DNA of 64,000 bases from Paraspadella gotoi (lineage: Eukaryota; Animalia; Chaetognatha), in NCBI GenBank assembly GCA_051294375.1, contig CM119268.1, forward strand, positions 17,176,502 through 17,240,501. Direction: 5' to 3'. The position numbers were made by a program, and so were the translations under genes. A model generated the notes under the pieces. It made no database searches and was not told the origin of the DNA. It was given only the letters and a program-made list of their open reading frames with translations. Below are positions 29,214-59,120 of the stretch, in pieces (positions within the stretch are counted from its first letter, which is position 1; each line of letters starts with the position of its first letter).

Positions 29214-29693
29214 GCAAAAGCATTTTAAACGAGAAAAAAAATTAAAGCTCTGTCTTAGTTTTCTGCGTCTAAAGTTAATAAAATACTTTTTAATATTTAA
29301 GGTAATTTGCATATATCTACAATAATCACCAGTTTTCTTATTTACGATATTTTTTTTACTGTTATGACCAAAAGTACTCTCAATCTTAATAATTTTTCTG
29401 AGCAAAATTGATTTTAAAAATCGAAGCTTACTAAAAATCCTTAACTTTGTATTCTATTCATATTAAATACCATAGTGAACAGCAATGAAAACTAAACCAG
29501 GTGAAAAAAAATATCATTTTCATATTTATAACGCTTTAGGTTTTGATTTCAAATATAAAATTAAGAAATTTTGAAAATTTAAACATGACGTAATATGATT
29601 GTGTCGCGAATTGTCTCATGAATTTCCCGTTTTCCTCGGCGCCGTTCTCTCCTCTCCCCAGTCTACCGACCAGACCCACCCCCTCGATCCGTG

Positions 29694-32600
29694 ATGAACG
29701 CCGGATATCGACCAGGCAGCGCCGCCCGAAAGCCCGGAGGAGGCGCGGCTCCGGTGGGTCGCCCTCCTGGCACAGCCTCACGCCTGATGACCGGAGGAGC
29801 AGGCCATCCACCGGGCACGGCTTCGGGCATGTCGGGCTCCGCCCTCATGGCCAACCTCCGCGTCTCCGACCGGCCCATGACCCAACAGGGGCTTGGGGGG
29901 CCAAAGACGGCCGGGAAGGGCCCCGGCCGGCAGGTGCAGGACAAAAGCTACTGGCTGGGGGTCCTGAGGCACAAGATGCACGAAATCGGCGGAGAAGTTG
30001 AGAGGCTGCAGAGAGAGATCGAGGATGTGTCGGAGCAGAACGCCTCCTTCTTGGGATACGAGAAGACGGCAGAGGGATTGGCGGCGGAGATTAAGGAATT
30101 GCAAGTAAGGATGAGCGAAGATGTAGAAAGAAAGATAGACAGAAAGAAAAAAGGAAGAAAGAAAGATAAAAAGAAAGAAAGACAGAAAGAAAGAAATAAA
30201 TTAAAAGAAAAATTGAAAGAAATTAGAATGAAAGATCAAAAACAAAAGAAATTAGCCCAAAGAAGAAAAAGAACTCTTTTTATCCCTATCTGACCTACCC
30301 ATTCCCACCCTCCTCTTTCCCCACCTCCCCCCGTCCCCACCCCTCTAATCCAAGGGTCAACTCGCCGACTACAACCTCCTCATGGACAAAGTGAACACGG
30401 ACGCGGACGCGAGTTCCATCCGATCCGAGACTCACGAACTCGCCGCGCGGAATCGCAACGAAGAGAAGGAGCTGGACGAGTTCTTCACGGCCAAGACCAA
30501 AGTGGAGCAACAGATCGCGGGAGTGGAGCGGGAGATGGATCAGGAGCGGAGAATGGCCGACACTATCGTGGCCGACATGCCGCCGAATACGCGGCTGCAG
30601 CATCAGAGGTGAGGGTTAGTCAACACATTCACTATCGCCTTACAGCGTCAGCGCGGTGGCCTAAGCGCGAGCGCCCCACTATTATGAAATATAGCAGGCG
30701 GGATGGGATGTGTGGTTGACAATAAGGCGTAGTGAAAGTTACATACGAAAATTCTAAAAGTCAACTATGAACAACATACCATCAGTGAACATTATTTGTA
30801 AAAAATTCATTTTATGTTTTTTAATTTTCGCAGTAGGCTATATTTATATATAGTACTATCCTTATAAAATCGAAAAATTTCAAAATAGGCTTTTCTTAAT
30901 TTTGATTGCAGATTTGAATTCCTCATCAAAAGTTGATAAAAGAAAATATAAATCATTTTTAAAAATTCTTTCATTAAGTGAGTTAAAAATTAAAAAAACT
31001 ATATTTAATATATAAAAAGTTAATTTTCAGCTTAAAGTATAGCTTTTTCTAATTTTTGACCCACTTAATGAAGGAATTTTTCAAAAAGAATTATATTTCT
31101 TTTTAACAACTTTTTATGACAAATCCAAATCTGCAAAAAAATCTTAGAAAAAAACTGTTTTGAAATTTTAACATTTATTGGTTTAATACTAGTATAAATA
31201 TGGCCTACTGCGTAAATTGTAAAATTTATTATAAATTTTTTTATTACATAAATGTTCATTAATATAATGTTGTTCGTTCCTCACTTTTAGAATTTTAATT
31301 TAAGTTAAATTTAGAAATTTTACTACGCCCTAGTTGACAATGTTCACTGATTGGTCAGATCCGTAATAACAGGCGGTAATTTGTCAAGCCTATGGTGCAC
31401 TAGAGAGGGAAGTTTGTTTCGTGATTTGTTTCGTATATTGACCGACGCATCGACCGACAATATCATCACCAAAGACGACGATAATGATGGCGAAGACGTC
31501 GATGAAGACGAAAACCTTTTTATCTTCAATTCGCAGACTGAAAAATATCAACGAACAGCTCCACCGTTCGCTGGAGCAGCAGCAGCAGGAGCTGGATACG
31601 CTGGAGTCGCGCCGGAGGGAGATGGAGGCGGAGATCAGCAGCAGCCAAGTGAAGCAGGAGGCGGTGAGACTCAACGAGCAGATCGAAGCCTTAGAGGAGA
31701 AGAGGGATTCGCTGCTCAACGAGATCAAGTCGAAGNNNNNNNNNNNNNNNNNNNNNNNNNNNNNNNNNNNNNNNNNNNNNNNNNNNNNNNNNNNNNNNNN
31801 NNNNNNNNNNNNNNNNNNNNNNNNNNNNNNNNNNNNNNNNNNNNNNNNNNNNNNNNNNNNNNNNNNNNNNNNNNNNNNNNNNNNNNNNNNNNNNNNNNNN
31901 NNNNNNNNNNNNNNNNNNNNNNNNNNNNNNNNNNNNNNNNNNNNNNNNNNNNNNNNNNNNNNNNNNNNNNNNNNNNNNNNNNNNNNNNNNNNNNNNNNNN
32001 NNNNNNNNNNNNNNNNNNNNNNNNNNNNNNNNNNNNNNNNNNNNNNNNNNNNNNNNNNNNNNNNNNNNNNNNNNNNNNNNNNNNNNNNNNNNNNNNNNNN
32101 NNNNNNNNNNNNNNNNNNNNNNNNNNNNNNNNNNNNNNNNNNNNNNNNNNNNNNNNNNNNNNNNNNNNNNNNNNNNNNNNNNNNNNNNNNNNNNNNNNNN
32201 NNNNNNNNNNNNNNNNNNNNNNNNNNNNNNNNNNNNNNNNNNNNNNNNNNNNNNNNNNNNNNNNNNNNNNNNNNNNNNNNNNNNNNNNNNNNNNNNNNNN
32301 NNNNNNNNNNNNNNNNNNNNNNNNNNNNNNNNNNNNNNNNNNNNNNNNNNNNNNNNNNNNNNNNNNNNNNNNNNNNNNNNNNNNNNNNNNNNNNNNNNNN
32401 NNNNNNNNNNNNNNNNNNNNNNNNNNNNNNNNNNNNNNNNNNNNNNNNNNNNNNNNNNNNNNNNNNNNNNNNNNNNNNNNNNNNNNNNNNNNNNNNNNNN
32501 NNNNNNNNNNNNNNNNNNNNNNNNNNNNNNNNNNNNNNNNNNNNNNNNNNNNNNNNNNNNNNNNNNNNNNNNNNNAAAAATGTCTCTCCTTCCACCGGCC

Positions 32601-33400
32601 GGCCCGAAGGAAGAACGGGAACGCCTCCTGAAGCAAGTCAAGGAAGACAACCAAGAAATCGTGGCCATGGAGAAACAGACCAAAGAACTGCAGGACAAGA
32701 TGCAGCAGTTGCAGGCGGAGGTGCAGCAGTTGGACATGGACATCGACGAGAACCAAGGGGAACGGAACGCGCAGTACAAGAAGCTGAAGAAGAGAGAAGA
32801 GGAAATCGAGGAATTCATGGAAGGATTCGACGAGAACAAAGCGAATGAGATCAAGAAGTTGGGGCAGTTGGAGAGGAACGTGGCCAGCATCTTGGAGTCG
32901 ATGAGTCGGTATGGGGTCCATGAATAAAAAGAATAAGTAAATAAATAAATAAGTCAAACAATGGAATAATCAATTAACCAACCATAGATTGTCGATACAT
33001 TGATTTCAAATTGATGGATTCTGTATTTTAGATATTTATAGTAATTTATACTATTCGTCATAAAATTGCGAAATCGTTTCCCCCTTCTCAGCAAACTTGG
33101 CAGCATGCACTCCCTCCCGTCTCAAGCTGACTTCGAGACTCTCAAAAAAGACCTGGAAGTCAAGGAGCAAGAGATGCAGAAGAGCGAATACACGTCTGGC
33201 GCTTTGCTCCAGCAGCACGAGATGCTCGCGGCCGATTTGGGCAAAGTTGAAACGCTGGAGCAGAAAGTCAAGGCGGAGCTGGAGACGCTGGAGGAAAAGA
33301 TCGGAAAGATGGAGAAAGAGCTCCTCGTTTATGTTGATGTAGAGAAGTTGACCCAAGATGCGGAAGAGAAGAGGACCCGGTTGCAGTGGGAGAAGGTGAG

Positions 33401-33486
<86 letters not shown>

Positions 33487-33831
33487 CTCTCTCTTCTCAA
33501 TCAATCAATAAATAAAGCATCAATCGTACCAATCAATCCGCATTCTTAGGTGGCCCTCGGCAAGCAGGTTGAGAACACGAAAAAGGTCATGAAGGAACTA
33601 AACGTGGAACACGAATCCCTGAAGAAAGAGTTGGAAGACAACGAGACACACGCTCAGCTGAACAATCTAGAGCGAAAGCTGCAGCAGCATGAGATGAACA
33701 ACTTCGTCGTCAAGGAATTCGTGGCCAACAAACGAGCAGAGAGCGACTATCTGCCCATCAAGAAGATGGTCAATGACCTCGTCACTGATTACAACGGGAG
33801 GTTGAAGGAGTTCATGACAAAGGGGAAGTGA
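29694..33831 (+). CDS. IFT74: Intraflagellar transport protein 74 (IFT74/CMG-1)
   Basis: Exons 29694-30104, 30355-30608, 31537-31735 (then N-gap), ~32597-32908, 33092-33395, 33550-33831. Motifs: [31 protein letters not shown]; [15 protein letters not shown]; [17 protein letters not shown]; [23 protein letters not shown]. Confidence 0.95.
30630..30734. mobile_element. Putative 105-bp MITE-like element with CACTA-type terminal inverted repeats
   Basis: Left end CACTATCGCCTTA, right end TAAGGCGTAGTG (reverse complement CACTACGCCTTA). No clear TSD. Confidence 0.35.
31736..32576. other. Assembly gap (841 N). Other gaps: 34664-34673 (10 N), 45757-45781 (25 N), 50017-50041 (25 N)
   Basis: Runs of N. 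Confidence 1.
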
Positions 33832-35732: not shown

Positions 35733-38700
35733 CTCTCTCACAGGGAGAACTGCGACGAGCTGCGTCAGGATCAACAGATGCGACATCTGCAATCCGTGGC
35801 GAGAGAGAGGGCGGCGCAAATCTGGGAGAAAGAAAAGAGGAAAGAGACGAATGCGAGAGAGGAAGAAGTTTGGGCGAGACTGTGGGAGCAGGATAAGATG
35901 TCCAAAGATCAGAAGGCGGACGAAGAGGCGATGAAGAAGGCGTTGGCGAACAGGGAAAGGTAAGGTGTGGTTGGGGAGAGTGAGAGGAGTGAGTCTGAGA
36001 TAGAGACGGAGAGATAGACAGACCGATGGCCAAAAAAAAAATTTACCTCTTTAAATATCCTTATCAGGTTGAGCGTTTTGAGCCAACAGATGGACGCGTT
36101 GCAGGCGCAAAAGAAGGAAGAGAAGAGAATTAAGGAAGAGGAAGCAAAAATTCTTCAGGTAAATCAGATTTACTAGATTTAAACAACAACAACAAGCAAA
36201 CGCCCGCTGATCTATCGACCCGTAGATCGCTACTGAACCCACTTTTTTCTCACCTTTTTCCCTGACTGTGAATCGCCATTATTTTTTTCACCATTTAAAA
36301 TACGAAAAAAAAATAAACACTAAAAAAAGTATTTTTTAACTTTAGACATGTTTAGTCGGGGAGTAAGTAGGGAAGTTATGTAAACATTGTTTACCTAACT
36401 TTCCTCCATTCCCATCGCCCGACCCTTACCCTCCCCTACCCTCTTCCACCGTCCAGGAACAAGAGGGCCTCCGCCGTCTCGAGGCCCTTCAGGAGCGCTT
36501 CTTCGCCCTGCGCAACTCGGAGCGGTATCGTCGCGACCTTCGACGCGGGCGGCGGATGGCGTTGAAGGCGGAGTTGACGAGACAGAGAGAAGAGATGGCG
36601 CTGGATCTGGAGATGCTCGCCCGGTTGGACTCGGAGATCAAGGACGAAGCCGCGAAGGAGAAGAATGAGAAGAGGAGGATGAGGGACGAGTTGGAGCGGT
36701 GAGTGGTGGGAGGGGGTGGAAAGGAGGGTGGTTTAAAAAATGGGTGGTGAGTGGTGAGTGACAGGTGAGTGGTGGTAGGGGCTGGAGAGGAGGGTGGTTT
36801 AAAAGGTGGGTTGGTGATTGGCAAAATCGGTTGATGGATTTCTGAAGCCGGGAAATAATGTTTATGGCTAAATTCGTCTTTGGGTTTCACTTCTTAGTTT
36901 AATATTTAGATATGTTTTTAACTTTATTCCTTGCCACCTGATACTGAGCATAATTTCTGTCTAGTTTTCGAATTTAAAAAAAACCTCATTATAATACTTA
37001 ATCTGTGGATAAGGCGCTAAGTGGGCGGAAGATGACTATCCGTAACATCTATAACCCCCTTTAGTAGCCATGGAACGGGTCCTGGGCTTGGAACCAGGCT
37101 TGAGGGGTTGCCACGCCCCCAAGGCGGCTTACGGCCGTCCTCACGCTTCCCACAGGGTAGGTACCGGGTTGGGATTGAACCCGGTACCTAGTGGTCATGA
37201 GCTGCTGGCTTTACTCAATGAGCCACCGGGTCAGGACTGAAGGTGTCATGCTTATATGCGGGGTGAACCTAGGCAATGCCCGACTACAAATCTTATCGTT
37301 TTACTTTTTAGATACATGAATTACTTAGCTCAAGAGAAAGCGGCCAAGGAGGAAGAGGAGAAGCGGATAGAGGCTTTGGCTGACGCTGAGGTGGAGGCGG
37401 CTTGGAAAAGAAGGGAGGCGCAGTGGGCGAGAGAGAGGGAAGCCAGGTGAGGAAAGACTTATCCCTTTGCCACCGATGTCGGAGATATAACCTGCAACAG
37501 TGAAACACTCCACCTTCGCACGATCCCTTCCAGATCCCGTCTCCTTCGAGAGGTCATCGCCTCTTGGGACGAACAGATCCGCGTCCACGTTTTGGCCAAT
37601 CAGGAGGCGGAGGCGTCGTTGGCGGCGGAAAGGCGAGAATTCGCCGCCCTCATTCAGAATCAGAAAAGGGTGAGTCGGAATGTTGTGGGATTAGAAACCA
37701 GTAATAGAAATAGTAGTAATATTAATAGTAGAAATAGTAATAGAAACTATTGTTATTGATTAGGTGACTTGCCGAAGATTTTGAATATTTTTGTTTCTTG
37801 TGCCCCTTTTGGGCGAGGCCGGGGATTTGAGAGGTCGTGACCCTTTTACTTTCGGGAAATAATTTCAAGGACATTCAATACATATTGTGCGTTATGGAAA
37901 GGAAAAATGGAAAAAAATTTTAAAAAGTTAATAATTAATTAAATATAATTATTTAGTTCGTTTTGTTCTGTTGATTACATCAACTCTTGATCCAGGTCAA
38001 TCAAAGCGATTATCCTTGAAAACACATGAAAAAATAAAACACTTCCCTTTTGTTTTTGTTGTTTTAACTCAATAATTCACTAAAGACTTCTTGTCAATCA
38101 TCTAGATGTCGCTCCGCTTATCTTTCATTTCCCTCGTTCGCTCGCCGATCGCCATTTATTCTCGTCAGTTCCTTCCTCTTTTTGCCTCTTTTTCCTTTTT
38201 TTCTCTTTCTCTTTATACTTTTCTTTTTTTTTTTCTCTTTTTTCTCCTCCATCATAAACTGTAATTAAATTCACCTGTCAAAGCGTCAGAGTCGCCGTCC
38301 GCTCGGACTTGGTCGCCATTTGTCGAGTCGGAGCCGACAATAAATCAGACGAGGGGTCGTGTAATTGTCAGCCTTTCTCTTGGTCTTGTCAGCGAAATGA
38401 CAGCGGTGGCAAATTCTACCGCTGCTTGGAACGTTATTGTTGGTGAAAGACTATTTTTTTTGGGATTGACTCAGAAAGTGAGACAAACAAGGAGTCAATG
38501 CGTTCGAGAGACTGGAACTTCTTTTTTTTTCTTTTTCTTATCAGGAGGACGAAGAACGAGCGGCTCAACTGGACGCGAGGACGAAAACCTATGCCGGGGA
38601 TTTGTTGCAGCAGGTGGGAAAAACGGAAGATGAGGATCGTTTTTTTGTCATCATTTTTGTCGGTTCTTGTCGAATTAAATGTGAAGATATGGCCTCGTCT

Positions 38701-39640
38701 CCAATTTTTCAAAAAAAGGGGGCTGGGGGTTATGATTTTATCTAACCCGATATGATGATTTAAAATTGAGTTATGAAGTCATGAGTTATGAAGGAAGGCT
38801 AAGTGTTTGCGTTATTCCCTTCTATAAACAATTCATTTTCTCCTTTTTATTTTTTTACGTTTTTCCTGTTGGTTTTTTTCCCCCATTTCAAGTTTTTCAC
38901 GATTGGCACATACGTCATCCGGCGGGGAAAGAACAATTATACGTAAAAAAAAATAATCGTATTGATAGATATTTTAGGGAAAACGAGAGAATATCAATAA
39001 TTTATTTAACATTAATTTTAAAAAAAATTGTATTTGTCCAGATCGACTACAACAAAAAAGTCGCGTATGAAAAACGAGAAGAGGAGACAAAGATGAACGA
39101 GGAAGGAATCAAAGAAGAGAACGAATATCGACGGAAGGTGCAGGTAAGGTGTCTATCAGCAGGTGCAGGGCAAGGAATAGCATATGCCGTTTCTGTTAAC
39201 AGGTGCAGGTAAGATGTCGATGAGCAGGTGTAGGGCAAGGAACAGCAGAGGCCGTCTCTGTTAACAGGTGCAGGTAAGGTGTCTATGAGCAGGTGCAGGG
39301 CAAGGAAAAGCAGATGCCGTCCCTGTTAATAGGTAAAGGTAAGGTGTCAATGAGCAGGAACAGGGCAAGGAACAGCAGAGGCAGTCTCTGTTAACAGGTG
39401 CAGGTAAGGTGTCGATAAGCAGGTGCAGGGCAAGGAACAGCATATGCCGTCTCAGTTAACAAGTGGTACTTGAAGGTAGGAGCGAGAAAACCATGCTCGA
39501 AAATAATTAATACAATTTATTACTTACGTTATGACATTATTTTTTTTTTATTTTGGCAGTTTGTGTTGGAAAATCCCGATCCACGGCGAATGCATCCAGT
39601 CAAGATACGGTCGATGCCGTTCGAACCCGTCGCTAATTAG
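34146..39640 (+). CDS. CFAP53: Cilia- and flagella-associated protein 53 (CCDC11; trichoplein family)
   Basis: Eleven phase-consistent exons: 34146-34252, 34481-34652, 35272-35459, 35744-35959, 36068-36158, 36457-36698, 37312-37446, 37534-37669, 38545-38613, 39042-39143, 39560-39640. Motifs match CFAP53: REITGPYP; LRSEWEENS; RRQRLREQLRAEE; ETSIERQAKMR; QQFRENCDELR; RLWEQDKMSK; MHPVK at the C-terminus. Confidence 0.92.
37004..37288 (-). mobile_element. Solo LTR (285 bp) of the TRIM family at 44385-45121, in CFAP53 intron 6
   Basis: Termini TGTAG...CCACA on the - strand. Perfect 4-bp TSD AATC at 37000-37003 and 37289-37292. Colinear with both LTRs of the 44.4-45.1 kb element. Confidence 0.85.
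39136..39460 (+). repeat. Minisatellite, 5 x 65 bp, seeded at the CFAP53 exon 10 donor site
   Basis: Units start at 39136, 39201, 39266, 39331 and 39396; consensus approximately AGGTGCAGGTAAGGTGTCTATGAGCAGGTGCAGGGCAAGGAACAGCAGATGCCGTCTCTGTTAAC. Confidence 0.95.
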
Positions 39641-39993: not shown

Positions 39994-42900
39994 TCACCTT
40001 CCATCACTAGTAGGTTTCTCTCTGTGAAGTAATCTTCCTCATTTCCCCTTCCTCCACCCCCAAACGGCCATCCCTCCCCTTTCACGCTATCCCCTCCTTC
40101 GCCTCCCTCCACAACAACCACCTCTTCTCCTCTTTTCTCCTCCCCTCCACCCCACCCACGCCCCTTCGGCCTTCCGCCACGCCCCCTCCACCGCCTCGTC
40201 CCCGCCCATCTCCCACCATCGCCTCGTCAAGGCCCAAAGGGCGAGGAGGGAGAGGGCGAGACCGAGGAATCCGAGGACGAGAGAGTTGGTGACTCCGAGA
40301 TGCATGAGGTCGACCACGAAGCGATTGAGGATCGGGAGGCCGAGGGACTGGGAGTCGGCCACCGATTCGGGGTCGGGATTTTGCAGGAGCTGGAAAGAGA
40401 TGGCGTGGGGAGATCGTGTCGAGTTTGTCGAATATTGTTACCGGGTTCAAATCCCGGAGGAGCCCATTGTATTATTTTATAGATATCATAGATGACAAAG
40501 CATTATGTAGTATTTTTAGCAAATGAAAGAAAATTAAATTGATTTTCAAGGTCATTCATTAAAATATAATAGGACATTTTACAAAGAACGACAGTCCACA
40601 TACAAGGCGGCTCGTTGGTCTAGGGGTATGATTCTCGCTTTGGGTGCGAGAGGTCCCGGGTTCAAATCCCGGACGAGCCCGTTAAGTTTTTTTAATCATT
40701 TACAGATTACTTTAGCATTATCTAATTTTTTTATTTAATATATATGCTAAGTATTATGAAATATTATATAAAAATATTGATATTAAGTCTTTAACATATA
40801 TTAGGATATCTTACATGAAACAACGTTAATACTTAATGTTGGCTCGTTGGTCTAGAGGTATGATTCTCGCTTTGGGTGTGAGAGGTCCCGGGTTCAAATC
40901 CCGGACGAGCCCATATGTGTATTTTTAATCATTTACAGATTACTTAAGCATTATCTAACTTTTTATTTAATATATACTATGATACATTAAAACAAAATCG
41001 TTATCAAAACTGAACTCAAACTGTCTCTAATATACTATAAATATTTAATATATATGCTAATCATTATAAAATATTTTAGAAAAAAATATTGATATTCAAG
41101 GTCAGTCTTTAACATATATTAGGATATCTTGCATGAAAGATCAGTAGAAACTAATGTTGGCTCGTTGGTCTAGGGGTATGATTCTCGCTTAGGGTGCGAG
41201 AGGTCCCGGGTTCAAATCCCGGACGAGCCCACAGAGTTGATCTAAAATGTGCACTGTTAAGGTCGTATATTTTAGCTAATACGAGTGCTACGTTTAGTAA
41301 AATATTTCCCTCAAGCTCAATCACGAAAGCACCAACTGCAACCAATCAACCGATGAACTTTTTTTTTCGCTACTTCACTAAAAAAATGCTGGCACCTGAC
41401 TCCGCCTGATCAGCACCGCCGGCACCGGCGTCTCTGGCATGGCGTCGACGGCGCCGAAAAGAGAACGGAAGAGCTGGGAGAAGCGGCGCTGCAAATCTGG
41501 AGAGAGGGAAGAGGAAAGCGGCGCCAACCAGACATTGAATTGGAGCTCGAGGGAAGAGTTGACCACAAGGCCTACGGGATAAAGAGCAATCAATCATTAA
41601 TTCATAAGCCAGCGAATGAATAAATAAATATATAATTAAATAGATAAAAGAAACACAATCAATCAATCAATTAGAAAATTACATTAAATTGATTTAAATT
41701 AAATTAGATTAAATTTAATTAAAATTAAATTAATTCATTAATTTAGAAAATATATAGATTAATTTAAGTTAAAATAATATGATCTTTTCGATCGAATCAA
41801 TCAGATTAATAACCATCGTTCACCGGTGAATTAGTTGCTCATCGTTACAAAGTAGCCCTGTACAACCGATTTACTTACCCGTGTAAGTTCCACTTCACAA
41901 ATGCCTCATCATACGAAGAAGATCCATTGAGAAATTCTACCGAATTCTCATAGGAATGATGATGATGATGAATGATGATGATGATGATGATGATTGATTA
42001 TGATGATGATGATGAGATGATGATGACGACGACGAATGAGAGGGCGTTCTGAAAAATGGAGACTTGCGAAAATGGGTAGACCTTCTGACACATTCCGACG
42101 CTAACGGACGCCTAAATTGAAGTAAAATTGTTCATTTTTACTATTATAATAATTATTAACATTATGTTATTGATCTCTCCCCGTTGGCTTGTTACCCGAC
42201 CGGAGCGCCTCCTGCCCACTTTGGACGAAAGTAACACTCGTGTGTCTTTGTTTTTCGAAAATCGTCGTCGAGGGAAAAGCGAAGTCGAGGGTCGACTTGA
42301 GAACGAGACTCTCACCTTGGAAGTAAGAGGTAACGTCAAGATGATAAATCACATCGATTACATCACGAACTAATATCTAAATATAACATCAGAGATTTTA
42401 CTTTTAAAAAAATGAATCTTTGTTCAGGATTTATAAAGCAAAAAAAGGTCAATATAGCGATTTTCTTTTTCTATTACTCTTGGGCCTTGGACATTGTTAA
42501 CATCTGATCTAATGAATTTTTTTTTTGGGGGGTAATCGTTAAATATCTTTGGATGTGATACATATTTTTATTAGGATGTTCAAAACAAAAACATACTTAA
42601 ATGTTATGGTTCAATGTTCATTCCGCGTCCGTATTGAATTTAATTTGATATTAGAGAAATCAGTAATCGATTCTCGCCAACGCTGACGGATCATTCTTTT
42701 TTTTTTCAGACGCTGACCCAAAAACCGGTTACTCATTCGATCGTCTCGATAATCCGGACCCTGACAGAATCTGGGTTAAACCGAGAAAAAACTATTACGT
42801 TGACCCATCTGTTAACAATTAACCGGCTGGCTAATTTATCTTTCGCTCCTTTTTGTATCAAATAATGTTTTTTACAGCTTGCGTAAGTTTGAGTTGGAAG

Positions 42901-43160: not shown

Positions 43161-45136
43161 CTCGTCGTCGTCGGATCCCCAATAGGATTTCAAGGAAGTC
43201 AGATTTCGCCAACGAGTCAATTGGTTCGTCCTTTTCGCCGACGCCTTTGATTTCGTGGGGAAAAGAAAAGGATGATTGGTTAGTGGTTGCAAAGCGAAAG
43301 ACGATTCTAAATCAAGAATCGATTCCTTCTCTCACTTGACGCGGCATTCCGACGATGACGTCCTTAACGACAGACCACACTCTCCAGAGGCGCTGGAGGT
43401 TGGTCCGGTTGAATCGGGTGTCGTCGACGCACGTAAAGACGCCGCTTGTGGAGGCGGCGTCCTCCGTTGAGGCGCCGGTCGATTCGGCGTCGATAGTCAA
43501 TCGGTTCCTATCAGTTTTGTTCTTTTTCTTGTCCTTTTGTTTTTTCTTTTCACTTTTATCCAAATGGTTCTTCGCTGAATTATTTCTCCCGCCCCCTGAC
43601 GATGTTTCTCCTTCGAACTCTTTTAACGTCCACCGGAAAATCTCGGCTCTCGTTACCAAATCCGGAAACCGTTCTCTGACGTCGGACCAGAATTTTCCGG
43701 AAACGCGAAAGCCTTTCGGAAGGAAGAGTCGGGAAAGGCGAGGTTTAAATATATTTATATTCTCTACTACGAAGTTTGTATATTTCGTTAAAAACTTTTC
43801 CATATTTATCGCTTTACATCGCTAAAATAGTGAAAATTTTATTGTTTGGTTAAAGTAATCACCAACATCATGTTTTCCGATCTTATAAATCGTAGTTACC
43901 TCTAAAAATAATCAATTACTGTAAAAATATCATAATTGAATTAATAATATATATTTTCACGTCCACTATTCCCGACCTTCCAACCACTCTCTCGCCGGGC
44001 GTGTCTCGAAGAGCTTCAGGCCATATTGTATATTTTGATATTGGATATTATTGTGAAAGAGAAGGAATCGCGTAGAGGAGTTTGAGGAGCGGGACGTTGA
44101 GGAAGTCACGTTTGGATTTGATAGACGATGATTGATGATGATGATGATGATGATTGATGATGATGATGATGATGATGGGTGTGAGAAGGAGGAGGAGGAG
44201 CGACGAAGCTTCCGACCACCGATAGCGGACGGTTGGCGTTGACGATGGAGTCGTCGTTTCGTCGTCGTCGTCGTCGTTGACTTCGTCGAATGGTGACGTT
44301 TTGCCGATCCAGCGATCGATCGTAGACGAAGGGGCCGAACTGAGAGGGATGGGATCGGTAAGATACATATACTAATACTAATAATGTAGTCGGGCATTGC
44401 CTAGGTTCACCCCGCCAAAATCATGACACTTTCAGTTGTGACCCGGTGGCTCATTGAGTAAAGCCATCAGCTCATGACCACTAGGTACCGGGTTCAATCC
44501 CCAACCAGGTACCTACCCTGCCGGTGAAGCGCTGAGGACGGCCGTAAGCCCGCTTGGGGCATGGCAACCCTCAAGCCTGGTTTCCAAGCCCATGACCGTT
44601 CCATGGCTACTAAAGGGGGTTGATAGGAAGTTACGGAGTCATCTTCAAGCCCACTTAGCGCCTTATCCAACATGGTGAGCCCATTCCTGTCGAGCATATT
44701 CCAACCTGATATCCAGGCCCCTTAGGTCTAGCTGAAGATTGCTCCGCTCCCTCCGACTCGGAAAGGCAGTGCAGGGTTGGGTTAACGAATCGGGGGCCGC
44801 CCATGTAGTCGGCTATTTGCCTGGTTCAGCCGCCCCCAGCAAATCTGACACTTTTCAGTTGTGACCGGGTATGGCTCATTGAGTGTAAAAGGCCAATCAG
44901 CTCATGACCACTAGGTACCGGGTTCCTATCCCAACCAGGTAATCCTACCCTGCGAGAGCCAGCTGTTCGCGAGACGGCCGGTAAGACCGCCTTGGCGGGC
45001 CGTGGCAACCCCTCCAAGCCTGGTGTCCAAAGCCCAGGAACCCGTTTCCAGGCTACTAAAAGGGGGTTTATAGAAGTTACGGATAGTTCATCTTCAGGCC
45101 CACCTTAGCGCCTATGCCACAATTAAATACATAAAA

Positions 45137-45169
<33 letters not shown>

Positions 45170-45951
45170 TAATAAAAATTACACATACTAATAATAAGGT
45201 AAAAGTATATTTAAAGAAATACGTTTACTTTATTTCAATGAAACTACGGAGAAAATAAATAAATAAATAAATATAAATATAAAAAATAAATTAAATTAAA
45301 AAATTAAAAAAATTAATAATGAGCCCATATGCCAGAAATACATAAAAGTTCCCCCACCTCAACAAGCTGCGGCTTTTCTCCTTTGCCCAAAATATTCTTC
45401 GGGCCTGTTGACGATGCCGAACATCGAGATCTGTAGCGGTCTGACGCCATGGAAGTCGCCGCCAGGAGGCAAAGACGGCGGAGGTGGAGGCGTTGCCCGC
45501 CTGAAAAAATAAATAAAAGGGGCAATCGCTAATCGACAAGATATAAGATCTTCAAAATTGTTTATATATATCAAATATATCAAACAAGCAATGTATGTCA
45601 CGCCAAATAACGAATCGATCAAAATATCAATCCTTGAATAAAATTAGCAATAAACTTACTCTAAAAAATTAATGTATATTATAAATATATAATGCAAATT
45701 CCTCGCCTTTGTGAAAATTGAATTCCGGATTTACTCTTCAATTTAAAATTAACATTNNNNNNNNNNNNNNNNNNNNNNNNNAAAACCTCTCCTCTCCTCC
45801 TGCGCCGCGACGGAAGAGTTGAGCATCCTCAACACCTCCACCTGATCCTCGATGGAAAGAGAAGAATCGCCGTAGAGGAGTTTGAGGAGCGGACGTTGAG
45901 GGAAGTCACGTTTGGATTTGATGACGAGAGATGATGATGATGATGATTGAT

Positions 45952-45995
<44 letters not shown>

Positions 45996-46218
45996 GTGAG
46001 AGAAGGGGAGGAGGAGGAGCGGACGAAGCTTCCGACCACCGATAGCGGACCGTGGCGTTGACGATGGTCGTCGTCGTTCGTCGTCGTCGTCGTGTTGACT
46101 TCGTCGAAGGTGACGTTTTGCCGATCCAGCGATCGATCGTAGACGAAGGGGCCGAACTGAGAGGGATGGGATCGGTAAAATACATATACTAATACTACAT
46201 AATAATAATAATAATATA

Positions 46219-46273
<55 letters not shown>

Positions 46274-46360
46274 TACACATACTAATAATAAGTAAAAGTA
46301 TATTTTAAGAAATACGTTTACTTTATTTCAATGAAACTACGGAGAAAAATAAATAAATAA

Positions 46361-46427
<67 letters not shown>

Positions 46428-47190
46428 AATAAATAAATAAATAAATAAATAAAATAAAAAATAAATAATTAAATAATTAAATAAATAATAATTTAAAAAA
46501 ATAATAATGAGCCCATATGCCAGAAATACATAAAAGTCCCCCACCTCAACAAGCTGAGGCTTTTCTCCTTTGCCCAAAATTATCTTTCGGCGTTTGACGA
46601 TCCGAACATCGAGATTCGTAGCAGGTCTGACGCCATGGAAGTCGCCGCCAGGAGGCAAAGACGGCGGAGTGGAGCGTTTGCCGCGCTGGTACAGTTTTTA
46701 CGATATAATTCTGTTTTTCAATAAAATAAAAAGGAATATAAAAGTATTCGTGACTTAGTGACTCATTTATCCAAAAATTTAGGAATTTTTTCTCTTTCTG
46801 CAAATATTCTGGGGGGGGGAGGGAGAAGATTAAGTCTAAGGAACGAGAGTCGTATATATCCGGATCGTATATTTCCGTATGCGAGCCTTTTCTCGAAATA
46901 CAGAGTTAATCATCTTACCATCAACATTCGGGGTAAGACAAAGTCGATCGCGGAGGCGAGACTCCAGCAGCCGCAGCATCAGCGGCGGAACGACGAAGAT
47001 GGCGACGATGAGAGCGACGACGCCGACGACGAGGACGACGATGGGTTTGAGAGAGGGAGAGGCGATGGGGGCGGGGCAGGAGGAGGGGAAGGAGCAGGAG
47101 GATTCGGGGGAAGAGGAGCAAGGAGAATGTAGGGGACAGGGGCAGGAAATAGGGGAGGAGGAGAGAACGGAGACTTCGTCGTCGTCGTCG

Positions 47191-51256: not shown

Positions 51257-54200
51257 ATGAAGTCGTTGACATTTTGCATCGTTTGTTCCGGAATCTTCTT
51301 GGGGCTTCGCGGAGAATCGGTTGGAGAAAAAGGCGAAGACGAAAGGCTAACTCACCTCGCCGAGGGAAGTTTAAAAATTACATATTGATTCCGGTAAAAA
51401 AAAAGAAATTGCCAAATTAAAACAGAAGCTATTATTGTTATTATTTTCTTTTCTTAGAAAAAGCCTACAATGGGTTCGGCGTCTTTGAAGTCGTTCCCAC
51501 CACTGTGAAGCGACGATGAGAAATCTGAAGACTTTCTCCAGAAAATTGATGACGATTCCCGATGTGGAAGTTTACCCGCTTCCACACTAAACTCGGTCAG
51601 TTGTTACCACCTAATAATCTTTATTAAAAAATCTTTTAAATGATCTGAAATATTAAGTTTTTTAAAGTAAACAATGAATTCTCAATGACAAACTTAATAT
51701 AGATTTACCATAAGCTTATTTAGTGGAATAAATCAGTAAAATTTGGTTAGCATACACGAAGGAACTTGCACTGGCGCTTACCTGCTGAGGTCAATGTTTA
51801 TTATTTTCTTATTTATAATCTAATTGGACGTTATTATTTTTTCTTAGAATACAAAGGAATGACTCTGAAAGTCTCATGAAATCAATAATAATAAAAGCCT
51901 ATTTCAATGATTTTCAGTTATGAATAACGTCGTCAGCTTCGTTACTCCTCCGTCGTTGAGAGAAAGCGTTAAAAAGCAACTGAGAAGCCTCTTCTCACGT
52001 GGCGTCGCCAAAAGTGGGCGTGGCAAAGACGCCGAAAGCCGGCGGCGTCGTTTGAGCGAGACTGCTGACGACCTTTTGAGGAAAACAAACGAGGACGAAA
52101 TGTATCAGCCGATTCGGAAAACGACGAGTTTCAAGCCGATTCCGAAAACGAGGATCAAGGGAGGAAATCAAGTCGGCAACGACGAAGTCATGACAATAAC
52201 ACCGATAATTACGGACAGGTTTGATGAAAAAATCTGTGAAAATACTCACAAAATTGTTTTTTGAAAATATACTAACTAACGAAAAAAATGAATAAAAAAT
52301 TCTCTCTAAAGTGACCTTTTTCCCCCTCTTTTTTTTTCCTTTCCTTTCCTTTCCTTTCCTTTCCTTTCCTTTCCTTTCCTTTCCTTTCCTTTCCTTTCCT
52401 TTCCTTTCCTTTCCTCTCCTTTCCTTTCCTTTCCTTTCTTTCCTTTCACCTTTCCCTTTCCTCTTACTCCTTCCCTCCATGCCCAGATTCTTTGGAATCC
52501 GAGAATTCCACAACTCCTTCGCCGATTCCAGTTCCCATCGTCGGCCGATGGGTTCATCTGAAGCAACTCAACGATTGGCTCGACAAAATGGCGGATGAGA
52601 ATCCGAGGCGGGCGGAGATCTTCTTCGCCGGGCGTTCCGAGGAGGGCAGGATGCTGAAGGGCCTCGCAATCGGGCAGGGAGACGAGGTCAGTGTGGTTGG
52701 AGGGAGGTGGGGGGAGGTAAGTTTATTGGTTTGGGGGTCAGTGAAATTAGTGGAAAGGGACAACGAAACATATATGATTGGCGAACCAAAATGTAAAGAA
52801 ATGATATAAAAGTGTAGAAGTCAATATTCTTGGACAACAACTAAATGAAACATTCGAATTAAAGATAAATTTAAGTCGTTAACAAAGTCAATGACAAAAA
52901 TGAGACAAGGAAAACGATGATGATGAAACTGATTATCTAATTATGACGATGATGAGAATCTAATGATGATGACGATGATTATGACGATGCTCTACCGCTG
53001 ATGAGCTTCGCCTGTCAAGAGCCTCTGCCAGCGACCGCGACGTCAAGACGAGGGAAGCGGGGCGCGTCGAACGCGGAGATGAAACGGGCGGAGGCGTCGG
53101 ACCGAGAAGGAGACCGAGAAAATCATCAGCATCTCCCATCATCACCTTACAATAACTCCATCTGTCATCCTCACCTTACATTTAATTCTATCACTTTGCC
53201 CTTTTCATCAATTCGTATCTATTTTTTTTAAAACTACTCCTTTGTAAACTGGCTAATAGAATATACTAATTTTAGATACTAAACATTTTTCTTCCTCCTT
53301 TCCTTTTATTTTATTTTTCCCCTGATTTAGTATTCTTTACCGCTCTTTTGATGTACCTAATAGTCAACAGTTTTTTTTATTAAAAAAAAAGTAACGATTG
53401 AACAAACCTGCGATCAACGTAAAAAAATAAATATCCCAAACGCCTCCAATGAAAAAAAAAGGGTCTACGTTTCCACATCTCACCTTCTTTCACAAAAAAA
53501 AAGAAAAATAAACCTCGAAGCGAAACGGATTCACGTCGTCGACTTCTCTCCGGTATAACAAAAGAGAATCGACTAAAATAAAACACAACGAGGAAAGAAA
53601 AACAACAACAAAAAAAGAAAGAAAGAAGACAACCATATCTCAGACCCACAACCACAACCACAACCACAAAGACTAAGTCACATTGATAGAACGTCCACCA
53701 CCTCCGCTCATTTTTCCTTCTCCGGACAGAAATGCCCCGTGATCTGGATCCACGCGGGCATCCACGCCCGGGAGTGGATCGCCCCCGCCACATCCGTCTA
53801 CCTCATCGATCGACTCCTCAAGACCGAAGATCCGGTCGTCGTCGACATTTTGAAGCAGATCAAGATCTACGTCCTTCCGGTCGCTAATCCCGACGGGTGA
53901 GTTCAGTTGTCCTTGGAAATGGTGACTTTTGATAAGAGGTTTGGAAAGTAATATTTTCTTTTGAATATTTACGTAATACGTAGTCGAGGTGGCGAAGTTT
54001 AAAAATTTCGTGAGACATTTAAATTCTTTCGACTTCCAAACCAATCTTTAATTAACTTTTTTATTTTTCAATAAAAGTCTCAATTTATTTTTCCTTTTTC
54101 TTCACCCACCTTTTTTCCCCCTCCTTTCTCCCTCATCCAGTTACGTCTACTCGATAAAGTGCGATCGCCTGTGGAGAAAGAACATGAAAGGGGGCAGCAC

Positions 54201-55141
54201 CGACTACTGCTGCCGAGACCGCGAATATTGTTTCACGTAAGAAGTTAAAAGTGATGTTCGAAATCACGAACTCTCGATAAATCGGTGAATTAATGTCAAT
54301 AGTAAAGCTTTAAACGAATTCGGAAAGATCAAAAGAAAACTTGAGTCTAAAATCGAGGTTAAGTTTCAAATGTGAAAAAAATTAAACATATGTTGCATGC
54401 TTTTTAACTTATTTCCGTCTCGAGGCAAAATAATAATTTTTATATAAGCAGTTTTTCCGGTATAGCTAAGATTTTTTTGAATTGTAATTGCATCATAATG
54501 GTGCTTGGGGACGTGGACATGTTGTTTGATAAGTATATTGCCTTAATTTTTCTATATAGTCCTTTCACTCATTTTTATCATTTCTGACATAACATTTTTT
54601 TTTAATTTTGAAGTTGTCCAAAAGCATATCCTTCAAATCGCACATGAGTAAATAATATCACACCTAATAATGAGCACCATATTTATCTTTTCAAGGCTCC
54701 TCTTTATCTGATGCAGCAAAATTTTATAGAGACTCAAAATCAATGTCAAATCTATTTTTTAATGATTTGGGCCGATTTCCACCTATCTCTTTTTGTTCAC
54801 GTGAACTTATTTTTCAATTAAGTTAATAATATTTGGGTCAATGATAGAATAAACACTAAGCTTTTATTTGAGCTCTTTAACGATAATTTTTATAAAATAT
54901 TTAAAAAATCTCTTGCCATTTAAATAAAATTATAAGTTTTGATTCCGGACCCTGTACTATCAGTCCGACTGCCCCTCCCTCTTTATCTCACCCCCCCTTA
55001 TTACTAACTCCCCCAATTCGCGCTCCAGTTGCTTCGGGGTGGACTTGAACCGAAACTGGAACATGGCCTTCAACAAAGTCGGCGCCAGCTCCTGGCCTTG
55101 TGACCAAACCTTTCCCGGGGGATTCGCCTTCTCCGAGTCGG
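51257..55141 (+). CDS. M14A zinc carboxypeptidase (CPA/CPB-like) preproprotein, 5' half only
   Basis: Signal-peptide exon 51257-51368 ([19 protein letters not shown]). Prodomain exon from 51458 ([13 protein letters not shown]) has an apparent frameshift. Catalytic exons: ~52489-52686 (LNDWLDKM...GRSEEGRML), 53730-53896 ([15 protein letters not shown]...PVANPDG), 54141-54236 (DRLWRKN), 55029-55141 ([10 protein letters not shown]...FSE). No HSY or Glu270 exons were found in the window. Confidence 0.8.
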
Positions 55142-55529
55142 GTGGGTCGAGTTGGGGGTCGTCCCGGTGTAGACGGGGTGTACGGGGTGGACGGGGCGGG
55201 GGAGAGAAAAGGTTAAACTAAAAGTCATATGAAGAAAGTCGAGTCGATTTCTTGTCCGAGTAAGAAAAGAATAAACAGAAAAATAAAAATAAACAGAAAC
55301 CAGGAAAGGAATGAGCGAGTAACCTATGACAGAAAAATAGCTATAGAAATACATATATTTCCATATAAATTTTATTATATTTAAATATTAAACACAAAAA
55401 TATTTTAACAAATAAATAAAATCATAAATAATATTCATTTTAAAAATAAAAAAAATAAAGATAGTGAACAATTAATTTTGAAACATTCATATATAGGACG
55501 AGAGATAGTTTATATTTCTTATTAGTATA

Positions 55530-58500
55530 TCTAATTGGACGTTATTATTTGTTTCTAGAATACAAAGGAATTGACTCTAGTATAAGTTATGAAATAATTA
55601 AAAAGCCTATTTCAAATGATTTCAGTTATGCGAAATGACGGGTCGTCAGCTTTCGTACTGCCCGTTCCGCTTGAGAAGAAGCGTTAAAAAGCAACTGCAG
55701 AAGCCTCTTCTCACGTGGCATACGGGCCAAAAATGTGGGCGTGGCAAGACGCCGAAGCGCGGCGTCGTTGAGCGAGACTTGGACGACCGCTTTTGAGGAA
55801 CAATGAGGACGAATGTTCAGCCGATTTCGGAAAACGACGAGTTTTCAGCCGTTCCAGAAGACGAGGATCAAGGGAGGTAAGATCAAGTCGTGTCAACTGA
55901 CGGAAGGTCATGAACAATAACACCGATAATTTAGGACAAGTTTTTTGAGAAAAAATTGTGGAGAAATACTGCAAGCAAAATTGGTTTTTTGAAAAAATAT
56001 CTAACGTAAACGAAAAAAATGAATAGAAATTCTCTCATAAAGGACAATTTTTTCCCCCTTTCCTTTCTTTCTGTTCTCTTATCCTCCTTTGCCTTTCTTC
56101 CTTTCCTTCCTTACTTCCTCTTCCTCACTTCTTTCTTCGCCTCTTTCTCTCTACTTCCTTCTTCCTTCCTCGACAGATTCTTTGCGAATCCGAGGAATGT
56201 CCACACTGCGCGTGCGGGCTCAGCCGATTCCCAGTTCCAGATCGTCGGCCGATGGTTCATCTGAAGCATCCGTTGGGCTCGCAAAGATTGCGGTATGAGA
56301 TCCGAGGCGGGCGGAGATCTTACTTTGCCGGGCGTTCCGAGGAGGCAGGATGCTGAAGGCCCTGTCAATGCGGGGCAAGGGACGAGGTGAGTGGGGTTGG
56401 AGGGAAGTTGGGGGGAGGTAAGGTTTTATTGGTTGGTGGGGTCCAGTGAAAGTTAGTGGAACAAGGACACAGAAATTATGATTGGCGACCAAATGTCTAA
56501 GAATGTATTAAGTGTAGATCAATATTCTTTAGGGACAGAGACATACATAGTTCGAATCTTCAAGAAACATTCGAATTAAAGATAAGTTTAAGTCGTGTAA
56601 CAAAGTCAATGACAAATAATGAACAAGGAAACGATGATGAGAAAACTTGATTATCTATTTATGACGATGATGAGAGATCTAATGATGAATGACGATGATT
56701 ATAGACGATGCTCTAATCACGCTGATGAGCTTCCGCCTGTCAAAAGAGCTCTGCCAGGACCGCGATACGTCAAGCGGGGAGCGGGGCGACGTGCGAAGCG
56801 CGAGATGAAACGGGCGAGGCGATTCGGACCGGAGGGGAGGTGTAAAATCATCAAGCATCTCCCATCATCTTACATACTTTCATTAACTCGGTCATCCTCA
56901 CCTTACATTTAATTCTATCAACTTTGCCTTTGTCATCATTCGTATCTATTTTGTTAAAAGTACTCCTTTGTAACTGATATTGCTCTTACCGTGGCTAATA
57001 AAATATACTAAATTTTTAGATACTAAAATTGTTCTTCCTTCTTTCCTTCTTTTTTTTTTCCCCTGATTTAAGTATTCTTTACCGCTAATTTTGAAGTACC
57101 CGATTTAATAGTCCACAGTATTTTTTGTTATTAAAAAAAAGTAACGATTAGAACAACCTGCGATCAACGTAAAAAAATTAAATATCCAAACGCCCTCCAA
57201 ATGAAAAAAAGGGTCTACGTTTGCCACATCTCACCTTTCTTTCACAAAAAAAGAAAGAAAATAAACCTCGGAGCGAAACGGATTCACGTCGTCGACTTCT
57301 CTCCGGTATAAACAAAAGAGAATCGAACTAAAAATAAACACACAACGAGGAAAAGAAAACAACAACAAAAAAAATAAATGAAGACAACCATATCTCAGAC
57401 CCACAACCAACAAAAGTCACATTGATAGAACGTCCACCACCTCCGCTCATTTTTCCTTCTTCTAGCGGACAGAAATGCCCCGTGATCTGGATCCACGCGG
57501 CATCCACGCCGCGGGAGTGGATTCCGCCCCCGCACATCCGTCTACCTCATGCGATCGACTCCCTCAAGACCGACGAAAACGGTCGTCGTCGACATTTTGA
57601 AGGCAGATTCAAGAGATCTTCGTCCTTCCGGTCGCTAATCGTCCCACGGTGAGTTCAATTTGTCCTTGAAAGGTGCACTTTGATAGAGGTTTGGAAAGTA
57701 AATATTTTCTTTGAATATTTACGTAATACGGTATATATATACCTATAATAATACGGTAGTCGAAGGTGGCGAAGTTTAAAAATTTCGTGAGACAATTTAA
57801 ATCTTTCGACTTCCAAACCAATCTTTAATTAACTTGTTTTATTTTCAATAAAAGTCTCAATTTATTTTTCCTTTTTCTTCACCCACCTTTTTTCCCCCTC
57901 TTTTCTCCCTTGCCAGTTACGTCTACTCGATAAGTGGCGATCGCCTTGTGAGAAAGAACATGAAAGGGGCAAGCACCGACTACTGCTGCGAGACGGGCGG
58001 AATATATGAGTTTCACGTAAGAAGTTAAAAAGTGTTATGTTCGAAATCACGATTACTCTTCGATAATCGGTGAATTAATGTCATAGTAAATCTTTAAACG
58101 AATTCCGGAAAAGATCAAAGAAAACTTGAGTCTAAAATGCGAGGTTAGTTCAAAATGTGAAAAAAATTAAACATATGTTTGCATGCTTTTTAATTATTTA
58201 CGTCTCGAGCGCAAATAATAATTTTATTAAGCAGTTTTTTCGCGGTATAGCTAAGATTTTTTTTGAATTGTAATTGCATCATAATGGTGCTTGGGGACGT
58301 GGACATGTGTTTGATAAGTATATTCTGCTTAATTTTTCTAATATAGTCCTTTCACTCATTTTTATCATTTCTGACATAACATTTTTTTTTAATTTTGAAG
58401 TTGTCCAAAAGCATATCCTTCAAATCGCACATGAGTAAATAATATCACACCTAATAATGAGCACCATATTTATCTTTTCAAGGCTCCTCTTTATCTGATG

Positions 58501-59120
58501 GCAGCAAAATTTTAATAGAGACTCAAAATCAATGTCAAATCAATTTTTTAATGATTTGGGCGATTTCACCTTATCTCTTTTTGTTCCACTGTGAATTATT
58601 TTTCATTTAAGTTAATAATATTGTGGGTCAATGATAGAATAAACACAAAGCTTTATTTTGAGCTCTTTAACGATAATTTTTATAAAATATTTAAAAATCT
58701 CTTGCCATTTAAATAAAATTATAAGTTTTTGATTCCGGACCCTGTACTATCAGTCGACTGCCCCTCCCTCTTTATCTCACCCCTTATTACTAACTCCCCA
58801 ATTCGCGCTCCAGTTGTTTCGGGGTGGATCTTGAACCGAAACTGGAACATGCCTTCAAACAAGTCGGCGCCAGCTCCTGGCCTTGTGACCAAACCTTTTC
58901 CCGGGGATTCGCCTTCCTCCGAGTCGGGTGGGTCGAGTTGGGGGTCGTCCCGGTGTAGCGGGGTGTACGGGGTGGACGGGGCGGGGGAGAAGAAAAGGTT
59001 TAAACTAAAAGTCATATGAAGAAAGTCGACGTCGATTTCTTGTCCGAGTAAGAAAAAGAATAAACAGAAAAATAAAAATAAACAGAAAACAGAAAGGAAT
59101 GAGCGAGTAAACCTATGACA
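55530..59120 (+). pseudogene. Indel-riddled tandem copy of 51820-55340 (carboxypeptidase exons); probably an uncorrected long-read artefact rather than a true pseudogene
   Basis: Colinear with copy 1 including introns and flanks. Differences are dominated by 1-bp insertions and deletions that break every exon frame. Confidence 0.8.

Follow-up and report, generated by a model that had tools for sequence, protein, structure and literature searches.

A miniature long terminal repeat retrotransposon, probably of the Helenus type, with a decayed tRNA-like segment in its terminal repeats

Miniature terminal-repeat retrotransposons (TRIMs) that carry tRNA-derived sequence in their long terminal repeats (LTRs) have been described under the name Helenus, or TRIMp3 (Kojima, 2024; PMC10886601). 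Published Helenus elements have LTRs of 120–323 bp and a total length of 311–1263 bp, possess a primer site and a polypurine tract, generate 4-bp duplications in animals and probably originated several times by insertion of a short interspersed element (SINE) into an LTR (PMC10886601). Their published animal hosts are confined to chalcidoid and cynipid wasps, pteriomorph bivalves, some fishes, Lingula, lineid nemerteans and Mnemiopsis. This report describes a 737-bp repeat unit located at positions 44385–45121 of a 64-kb stretch of eukaryotic DNA (the window, i.e., the whole stretch that was analyzed) together with a solo LTR of the same family, and compares both with this and other classes of small retroelements. 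The preliminary description of the locus had pointed to the Helenus class, with its tRNA-like LTRs and its 4-bp duplications in animals, correctly according to the published account (PMC10886601).

The 737-bp unit (288 + 131 + 318 bp) is real, and its structure supports the reading as a non-coding miniature retrotransposon of the LTR type with a decayed tRNA-like segment in each LTR. The components of the full element and the solo copy are the following:

44385–44672, plus strand: 5' LTR, 288 nt, TGTAG...CAACA, 89.7% identical to the solo copy
44673–44803, plus strand: internal region, 131 nt, non-coding, beginning with TGGTGAGCCCA
44804–45121, plus strand: 3' LTR, 318 nt as read, TGTAG...CCACA
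37004–37288, minus strand: solo LTR, 285 nt

All three LTR copies open with TGTAG and close with ACA (TGT...ACA, the last bases being CCACA or CAACA). The similarity of the 5' LTR to the solo LTR has an E value of 3e-83 in blastn, which also pairs the 5' with the 3' LTR (78% identity, E 1e-52) and the 3' LTR with the solo LTR (79% identity). Coordinates and blastn thereby confirm what had first been proposed, namely direct repeats with TG..CA ends around 131 bp of non-coding DNA. The core (44673–44803) has no other blastn match within the window and no meaningful reading frame, and the only other blastn matches of the LTR in the window are stretches of the size of a B box at tRNA-Pro genes. 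Within the 64 kb the family is represented by two loci, one full and one solo, with three LTR copies in all.

Evidence for integration is provided by target-site duplications, by a second version of the flanking DNA and by sequences at the inner edges of the LTRs. The relevant features are:

37000–37003, no strand assigned: left target-site duplication of the solo LTR, AATC, read directly
37289–37292, no strand assigned: right target-site duplication of the solo LTR, AATC, read directly
44381–44384, plus strand: candidate target-site duplication to the left of the full element, ATAA, read directly
45122–45125, plus strand: candidate target-site duplication to the right of the full element, ATTA, read directly
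45855–46684, plus strand: near-empty site, flanking DNA without the element, junction near 46197–46218
44673–44683, plus strand: candidate primer-binding site TGGTGAGCCCA, with no spacer after the 5' LTR and starting with TGG
44791–44798, plus strand: weak candidate polypurine tract, the G-run CGGGGGCC (G5), ending 5 nt before the 3' LTR

The AATC/AATC duplication of the solo LTR is perfect over 4 bp and mismatched at the fifth base. In the full copy, ATAA/ATTA brackets the composite unit and neither LTR has a duplication of its own. A second flank block, of roughly 0.8 kb, is present 1.8 kb downstream, in which 45855–46203 aligns with 44055–44385 and 46218–46684 with 45126–45500; it lacks exactly LTR-core-LTR, give or take a few AT-rich simple-sequence bases. 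Because this duplicate block is without the whole unit, the 737 bp have been gained or lost as one piece.

The candidate primer site matches TGGTGACCCCA, the complement of the 3' end of bee tRNA-Trp (Fig. S2 in PMC10886601), at 10 of 11 positions, in locally noisy sequence and with a bee reference that may not fit the host. A tRNA-Trp primer is used by the hymenopteran (wasp) elements Helenus-2_SyJa and Gypsy-32_NVi (PMC10886601). The site does not match the window's own tRNA-Pro genes and has no second copy in the 64 kb. A further purine stretch, GGAAAGGCAG, occupies 44760–44769 and stops 34 nt short of the 3' LTR.

A degenerate tRNA-Met(CAT)-like segment occupies LTR positions 57–129. In the two copies with both boxes intact it is placed as follows:

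44441–44512, plus strand: tRNA-like segment of the 5' LTR, with A box (44447–44458), anticodon-like loop (44471–44477) and B box (44491–44501)
37171–37181 (B box) and 37214–37225 (A box), minus strand: tRNA-like segment of the solo LTR, LTR positions 57–129

It had been proposed that every LTR contains such a segment. This holds in 3/3 copies for the A box TGGCTCATTGAG (44447–44458, 44872–44883 and, on the minus strand, 37214–37225) and for the CTCATGA loop (44471–44477, 44901–44907 and 37195–37201), but the canonical B box GGTTCAATCCC is intact only in the 5' LTR (44491–44501) and the solo LTR (37171–37181), that of the 3' LTR being broken as read, GGTTCCTATCCC (44921–44932). The box A motif TRGCY occurs as TGGCT, and in the 5' and solo LTRs the box B motif GGTTCAATCC follows about 44 nt on. 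The combined pattern TRGCY-N25-50-GGTTCRANYC has four matches in the window (two real tRNA-Pro genes, the 5' LTR and the solo LTR) vs. 0.1 in block-shuffled windows. At 90% of its default threshold, ARAGORN draws a tRNA-Met(CAT) cloverleaf on positions 57–129 of the solo LTR; six calls are made at this threshold in the real window (three true tRNAs, two in the LTR and one other) and 0.47 in each shuffled window. With the threshold at 80%, the 5' LTR is called at positions 56–129. The best Rfam match of the 5' LTR is RF04354, on the opposite strand and at full length (22 bits, E 0.08 in a 901-nt search), the printed consensus of which appears, in our own reading, to represent a plastid tRNA(CAU) in reverse complement.

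When the two cleaner copies, the 5' and solo LTRs, are compared, no other part of the LTR is as well conserved as this segment, which has 3 differences in 73 positions vs. 27 in 212 elsewhere (Fisher p 0.045). Around the B-box loop the solo LTR contains a perfect 13-bp inverted repeat, TAGGTACCGGGTT/AACCCGGTACCTA (37158–37190), which forms a hairpin; the same hairpin is found with one mismatch in the 5' LTR (44482–44515), and in the predicted fold it replaces the T arm of a tRNA. Judged by its sequence, the segment is tRNA-derived and retains promoter-like boxes but is no tRNA. A genuine tRNA gene is out, as both the RF00005 gathering score and the default ARAGORN threshold are missed in every LTR.

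Taken together, the 737-bp unit and the solo copy are likely to represent a Helenus-like TRIMp3 element, in the LTRs of which a segment of tRNA origin has decayed but still shows A and B boxes of the polymerase III type. Several observations weigh against this assignment. The A box is devoid of the usual GG and reads CATTGAG, that is, TTGAG where YGG is expected; in Helenus, YGG is frequent in the latter half of box A and not obligatory (PMC10886601). The tRNA family of Rfam (RF00005) has no match in the LTRs even at E 10, ARAGORN at default settings makes no call in the three LTRs, pairing in the T and anticodon stems is limited to 3 of 5 positions, the minimum-energy fold is a 12–13-bp hairpin that includes the B box and not a cloverleaf, and the folding z-score of the whole LTR is -1.7. 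The duplication of the full copy agrees at only 3 of 4 positions, and no clean polypurine tract abuts the 3' LTR, neither of the two purine stretches touching it. The primer site, the polypurine tract and the duplication near the full copy are moreover uncertain because the sequence there is rich in indel noise and lies beside a 25-N gap. Finally, the sample consists of three LTR copies at two loci.

Transcription of the element by polymerase III is plausible on the basis of its box motifs and by analogy with its described relatives. The boxes of the 5' LTR would be the binding sites of TFIIIC and polymerase III, and initiation would fall near LTR position 45–55, about 10 nt upstream of where the tRNA-like part begins. 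The resulting RNA would continue through what remains of the 5' LTR into the primer site and the 131-nt core and on through the 3' LTR. Read-through of this kind agrees with the lack of a T4 terminator on the sense strand in the 5' LTR, in the core and in the solo LTR, a lack that at such a length is not significant. We infer that an autonomous Gypsy- or BEL-type element elsewhere in the genome would supply the proteins that package and reverse-transcribe this RNA in trans, and that a host tRNA, probably tRNA-Trp, would prime the reaction with its 3' end. Integrase would then recognize the TG...CA ends and make a 4-bp staggered cut. No reverse-transcriptase-like frame that might belong to the autonomous partner occurs within the 64-kb window. 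The family may still be active.

The Helenus structural class probably has several independent origins and, therefore, the present element may be another. A bolder and distinctly tentative version of the same assignment takes it as an independently born TRIMp3 lineage in an animal group from which no such element is on record. It would possibly be still active, with 45855–46684 as the other allele of a recent heterozygous insertion and the divergence between the LTRs as sequencing noise.

The chief rival as regards function, on the whole unlikely, is a plain TRIM under polymerase II transcription, its tRNA-like piece being a passive relic left behind when a SINE or tRNA long ago inserted into the LTR, and without a role as promoter at present. 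The degeneracy of the segment (no RF00005 match, an A box without GG, weak stems) agrees with such a relic, and polymerase III function in Helenus is itself unproven according to Kojima (PMC10886601). A TATA-like motif, CATATAAG, lies upstream of the segment in the solo copy (37251–37258), as the preliminary description had reported, but it is not conserved in the 5' or the 3' LTR and is confined to one copy of three. A relic is also at odds with the tRNA-like part being the best conserved of the LTR and with the retention of both boxes at a tRNA-like spacing, and the AATAAA signal expected on the side of polymerase II was not seen in the LTR.

The quality of the sequence around the full copy bears on a further explanation. 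In unit-cost alignments, the 5' and 3' LTRs are separated by 13 substitutions plus 48 indel bases (of which 39 are extra bases in the 3' LTR), the 5' and solo LTRs by 11 substitutions and 19 indel bases, and the 3' and solo LTRs by 15 substitutions and 45 indel bases (39 again extra in the 3' LTR); the extra bases of the 3' LTR are typically lengthened homopolymers. The differences are not a 65–78% divergence by substitution, and substitutions between both LTRs amount to about 5% at most. As most of the differences are small indels, the 78% identity of the LTRs is not taken as a measure of age. Comparison of the flanks of the full copy with their second copy reveals noise of the same sort, mainly 1-nt indels, and a gap of 25 N (45757–45781) separates the block with the element from the block without it. 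Gap filling with uncorrected long reads leaves indel-noisy sequence of this type as well as 25-N placeholders.

It could be argued on these grounds that the two-LTR layout, or the presence/absence relative to the duplicate block, is an artifact of noisy long-read gap filling and that the true locus is occupied by a solo LTR or a tandem array, or is empty. The homopolymer-type bases of the 3' LTR, the 1-nt indels of the flanks and the position of the gap all speak for such an origin, which is nevertheless improbable. A chimera due to a missed adapter yields inverted and not direct repeats; a unique 131-nt core and a TGG placed exactly at the edge of the LTR are unlike the product of a slipped alignment; and the independent solo copy with its perfect duplication proves that the family is real. 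The sequences beside the gap (45501–45756 and 45782–45854) do not overlap each other's partners. A simple overlap of contig ends was accordingly rejected as the source of the duplicate block, the gap-adjacent sequences not being shared. The two flank blocks could be paralogues, alleles placed side by side or a product of gap filling.

A dimer of a tRNA-derived SINE mobilized by a long interspersed element, with a monomer at 37 kb, has in its favor the tRNA-like A and B boxes and a unit length near 290 nt and is very improbable, being contradicted by a head that begins 57 nt inside the unit, by units that end in CCACA with no A-rich or simple-repeat tail, and by a 4-bp duplication that brackets the dimer as a whole, to which are added the TG...CA ends, the TGG after the first unit and the presence or absence of the dimer as a single block.

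Copies of the family were also sought outside the window. An invariant 22-mer had no match in collections of metagenome, prokaryotic-genome and viral contigs, and a gapped degenerate pattern of the A box and anticodon had none in metagenomes. The stop-free six-frame peptides of the element, joined and compared with 5.8 billion proteins, gave 8000 word-sharing candidates, none of them with E <= 0.001. Exact look-ups of three reading frames of the window retrieved no other assembly of the locus. The LTR k-mers were searched in 8 million papers, none of which prints the sequence of the family; no later literature extending Helenus to further lineages was found.

The window as a whole is eukaryotic and scaffolded, with four runs of N and a microsatellite content of 6.7%. 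The neighborhood of the solo LTR includes a cluster of three intact tRNA-Pro genes (anticodons TGG, TGG and AGG) at 40609–41230 on the plus strand, 3.3 kb away, each inside a repeat unit of about 168 nt, the units being 232 and 318 nt apart. A putative exon on the plus strand (37312–37447), rich in Glu, Lys and Arg and provided with an AG acceptor and a GT donor but without a Pfam match, has its start about 23 nt beyond the solo LTR, which is antisense to it. Close to the full copy, the exon-sized frame 43312–43803 (minus strand) has a sub-threshold match to the glycosyltransferase-64 family (E 0.0065); if genuine, the match could place the full TRIM inside or beside a minus-strand exostosin-like gene.

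Other protein-coding features of the window are a homolog of IFT74 at 29676–33825 (plus strand), which is complete with just six exons and has an 840-N gap (31736–32575) between exons, and two exon-sized frames on the minus strand, 19908–20357 with a RhoGEF domain (E 4e-18) and 4496–4894 with a FERM central domain (E 3e-7). The closest relatives of the IFT74 homolog among 5.8 billion protein clusters share about 55% identity at most, so that close annotated kin of the host are absent from that collection. A penaeid shrimp as host, an idea prompted by the microsatellites, was rejected, since close matches to annotated Penaeus proteins would then be expected and microsatellites make up just 6.7% of the window. 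In a neighbor-joining tree it forms a long branch beside crayfish and spiders, which may reflect long-branch attraction, and the distance tree supports no more than a metazoan, possibly arthropod, affiliation. Repeats include a 65-bp tandem repeat (39071–39530) of about seven units, 87–90% identical in the center, and a tandem duplication (53371–59110) with a period of about 3.78 kb and pieces that are 75–96% identical.

Elements of the TRIMp3 class scatter polymerase III promoter-like sites and pseudo-tRNAs across genomes, inflate tRNA gene predictions and can serve, in the manner of SINEs, as TFIIIC sites, insulators or neighbors of splice sites. A further family without sequence similarity to published Helenus would add to the evidence for repeated capture of tRNA-type promoters by LTR elements. 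The passage of polymerase III transcripts through LTR-type reverse transcription is validated for plant Cassandra only, and, if the insertion described here is polymorphic, the family would offer a live system for the study of this process.

Among the known element classes, plant Cassandra and nemertean Ajax are likewise TRIMs the LTRs of which contain a promoter of the polymerase III type derived from a small RNA, in the present case as judged by sequence motifs. Their promoter, however, derives from 5S rRNA (A box, intermediate element (IE) and C box) and their duplications measure 5 bp, whereas here the promoter-like part resembles a tRNA and the duplication is of 4 bp; identity with either was rejected on the absence of a 5S match in Rfam up to E 10. 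Canonical TRIMs such as PbTRIM of harvester ants (PMC3532108) are comparable in size, in the LTR-core-LTR layout, in the candidate primer site and in the presumed dependence on an autonomous element, but their LTRs are free of a small-RNA-like segment.

Plant retrozymes are also small non-coding LTR elements with a structured RNA motif in the LTR and 4-bp duplications, and are distinguished by the hammerhead ribozymes in their LTRs. Retrozyme identity was discarded, as no hammerhead match was obtained and a match to the twister type-P5 ribozyme is at noise level and restricted to one copy. This weak match lies on the minus strand at 37082–37145 (positions 144–207 of the solo LTR), scores 16.8 bits vs. 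a gathering score of 37.6 (E 0.51 in a 501-nt search) and rests on CCUGGUUCCAAGCCCAGG and GAGGA...CCGUAA, with no P1 loop and a P2 of 2 bp. It was not reported in the 5' or the 3' LTR and is probably due to chance.

The degenerate tRNA head with A and B boxes is shared with tRNA-derived SINEs (SINE2), in which, in contrast, the head stands at the 5' end, a 3' tail is present, the duplications are variable, and LTRs and a primer site are lacking. SINE2 elements are probably the evolutionary source of the segment by insertion into an ancestral LTR, as Kojima proposes.

The resemblance to Helenus extends over the short TG...CA LTRs, the short non-coding core, the occurrence of solo LTRs, a tRNA-like segment with A and B boxes some tens of bases inside each LTR, the candidate TGG primer site at the edge of the LTR, the 4-bp duplication, and LTR and total lengths that fall inside the published ranges. 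The present element departs from most Helenus elements in its A box without YGG and in a polypurine tract that is poor as read. By candidate primer site, its nearest counterpart is the hymenopteran Helenus-2_SyJa (tRNA-Trp). In a comparison by k-mers, none of 11 family-specific 9–12-mers from the LTR and core was found in the published file of Helenus consensus sequences, the only matches being the generic B box and one unrelated 9-mer. The copies in the window probably constitute a family that is new within a type of element described only recently, in 2024; the present case is a new example of that type and not a new kind.

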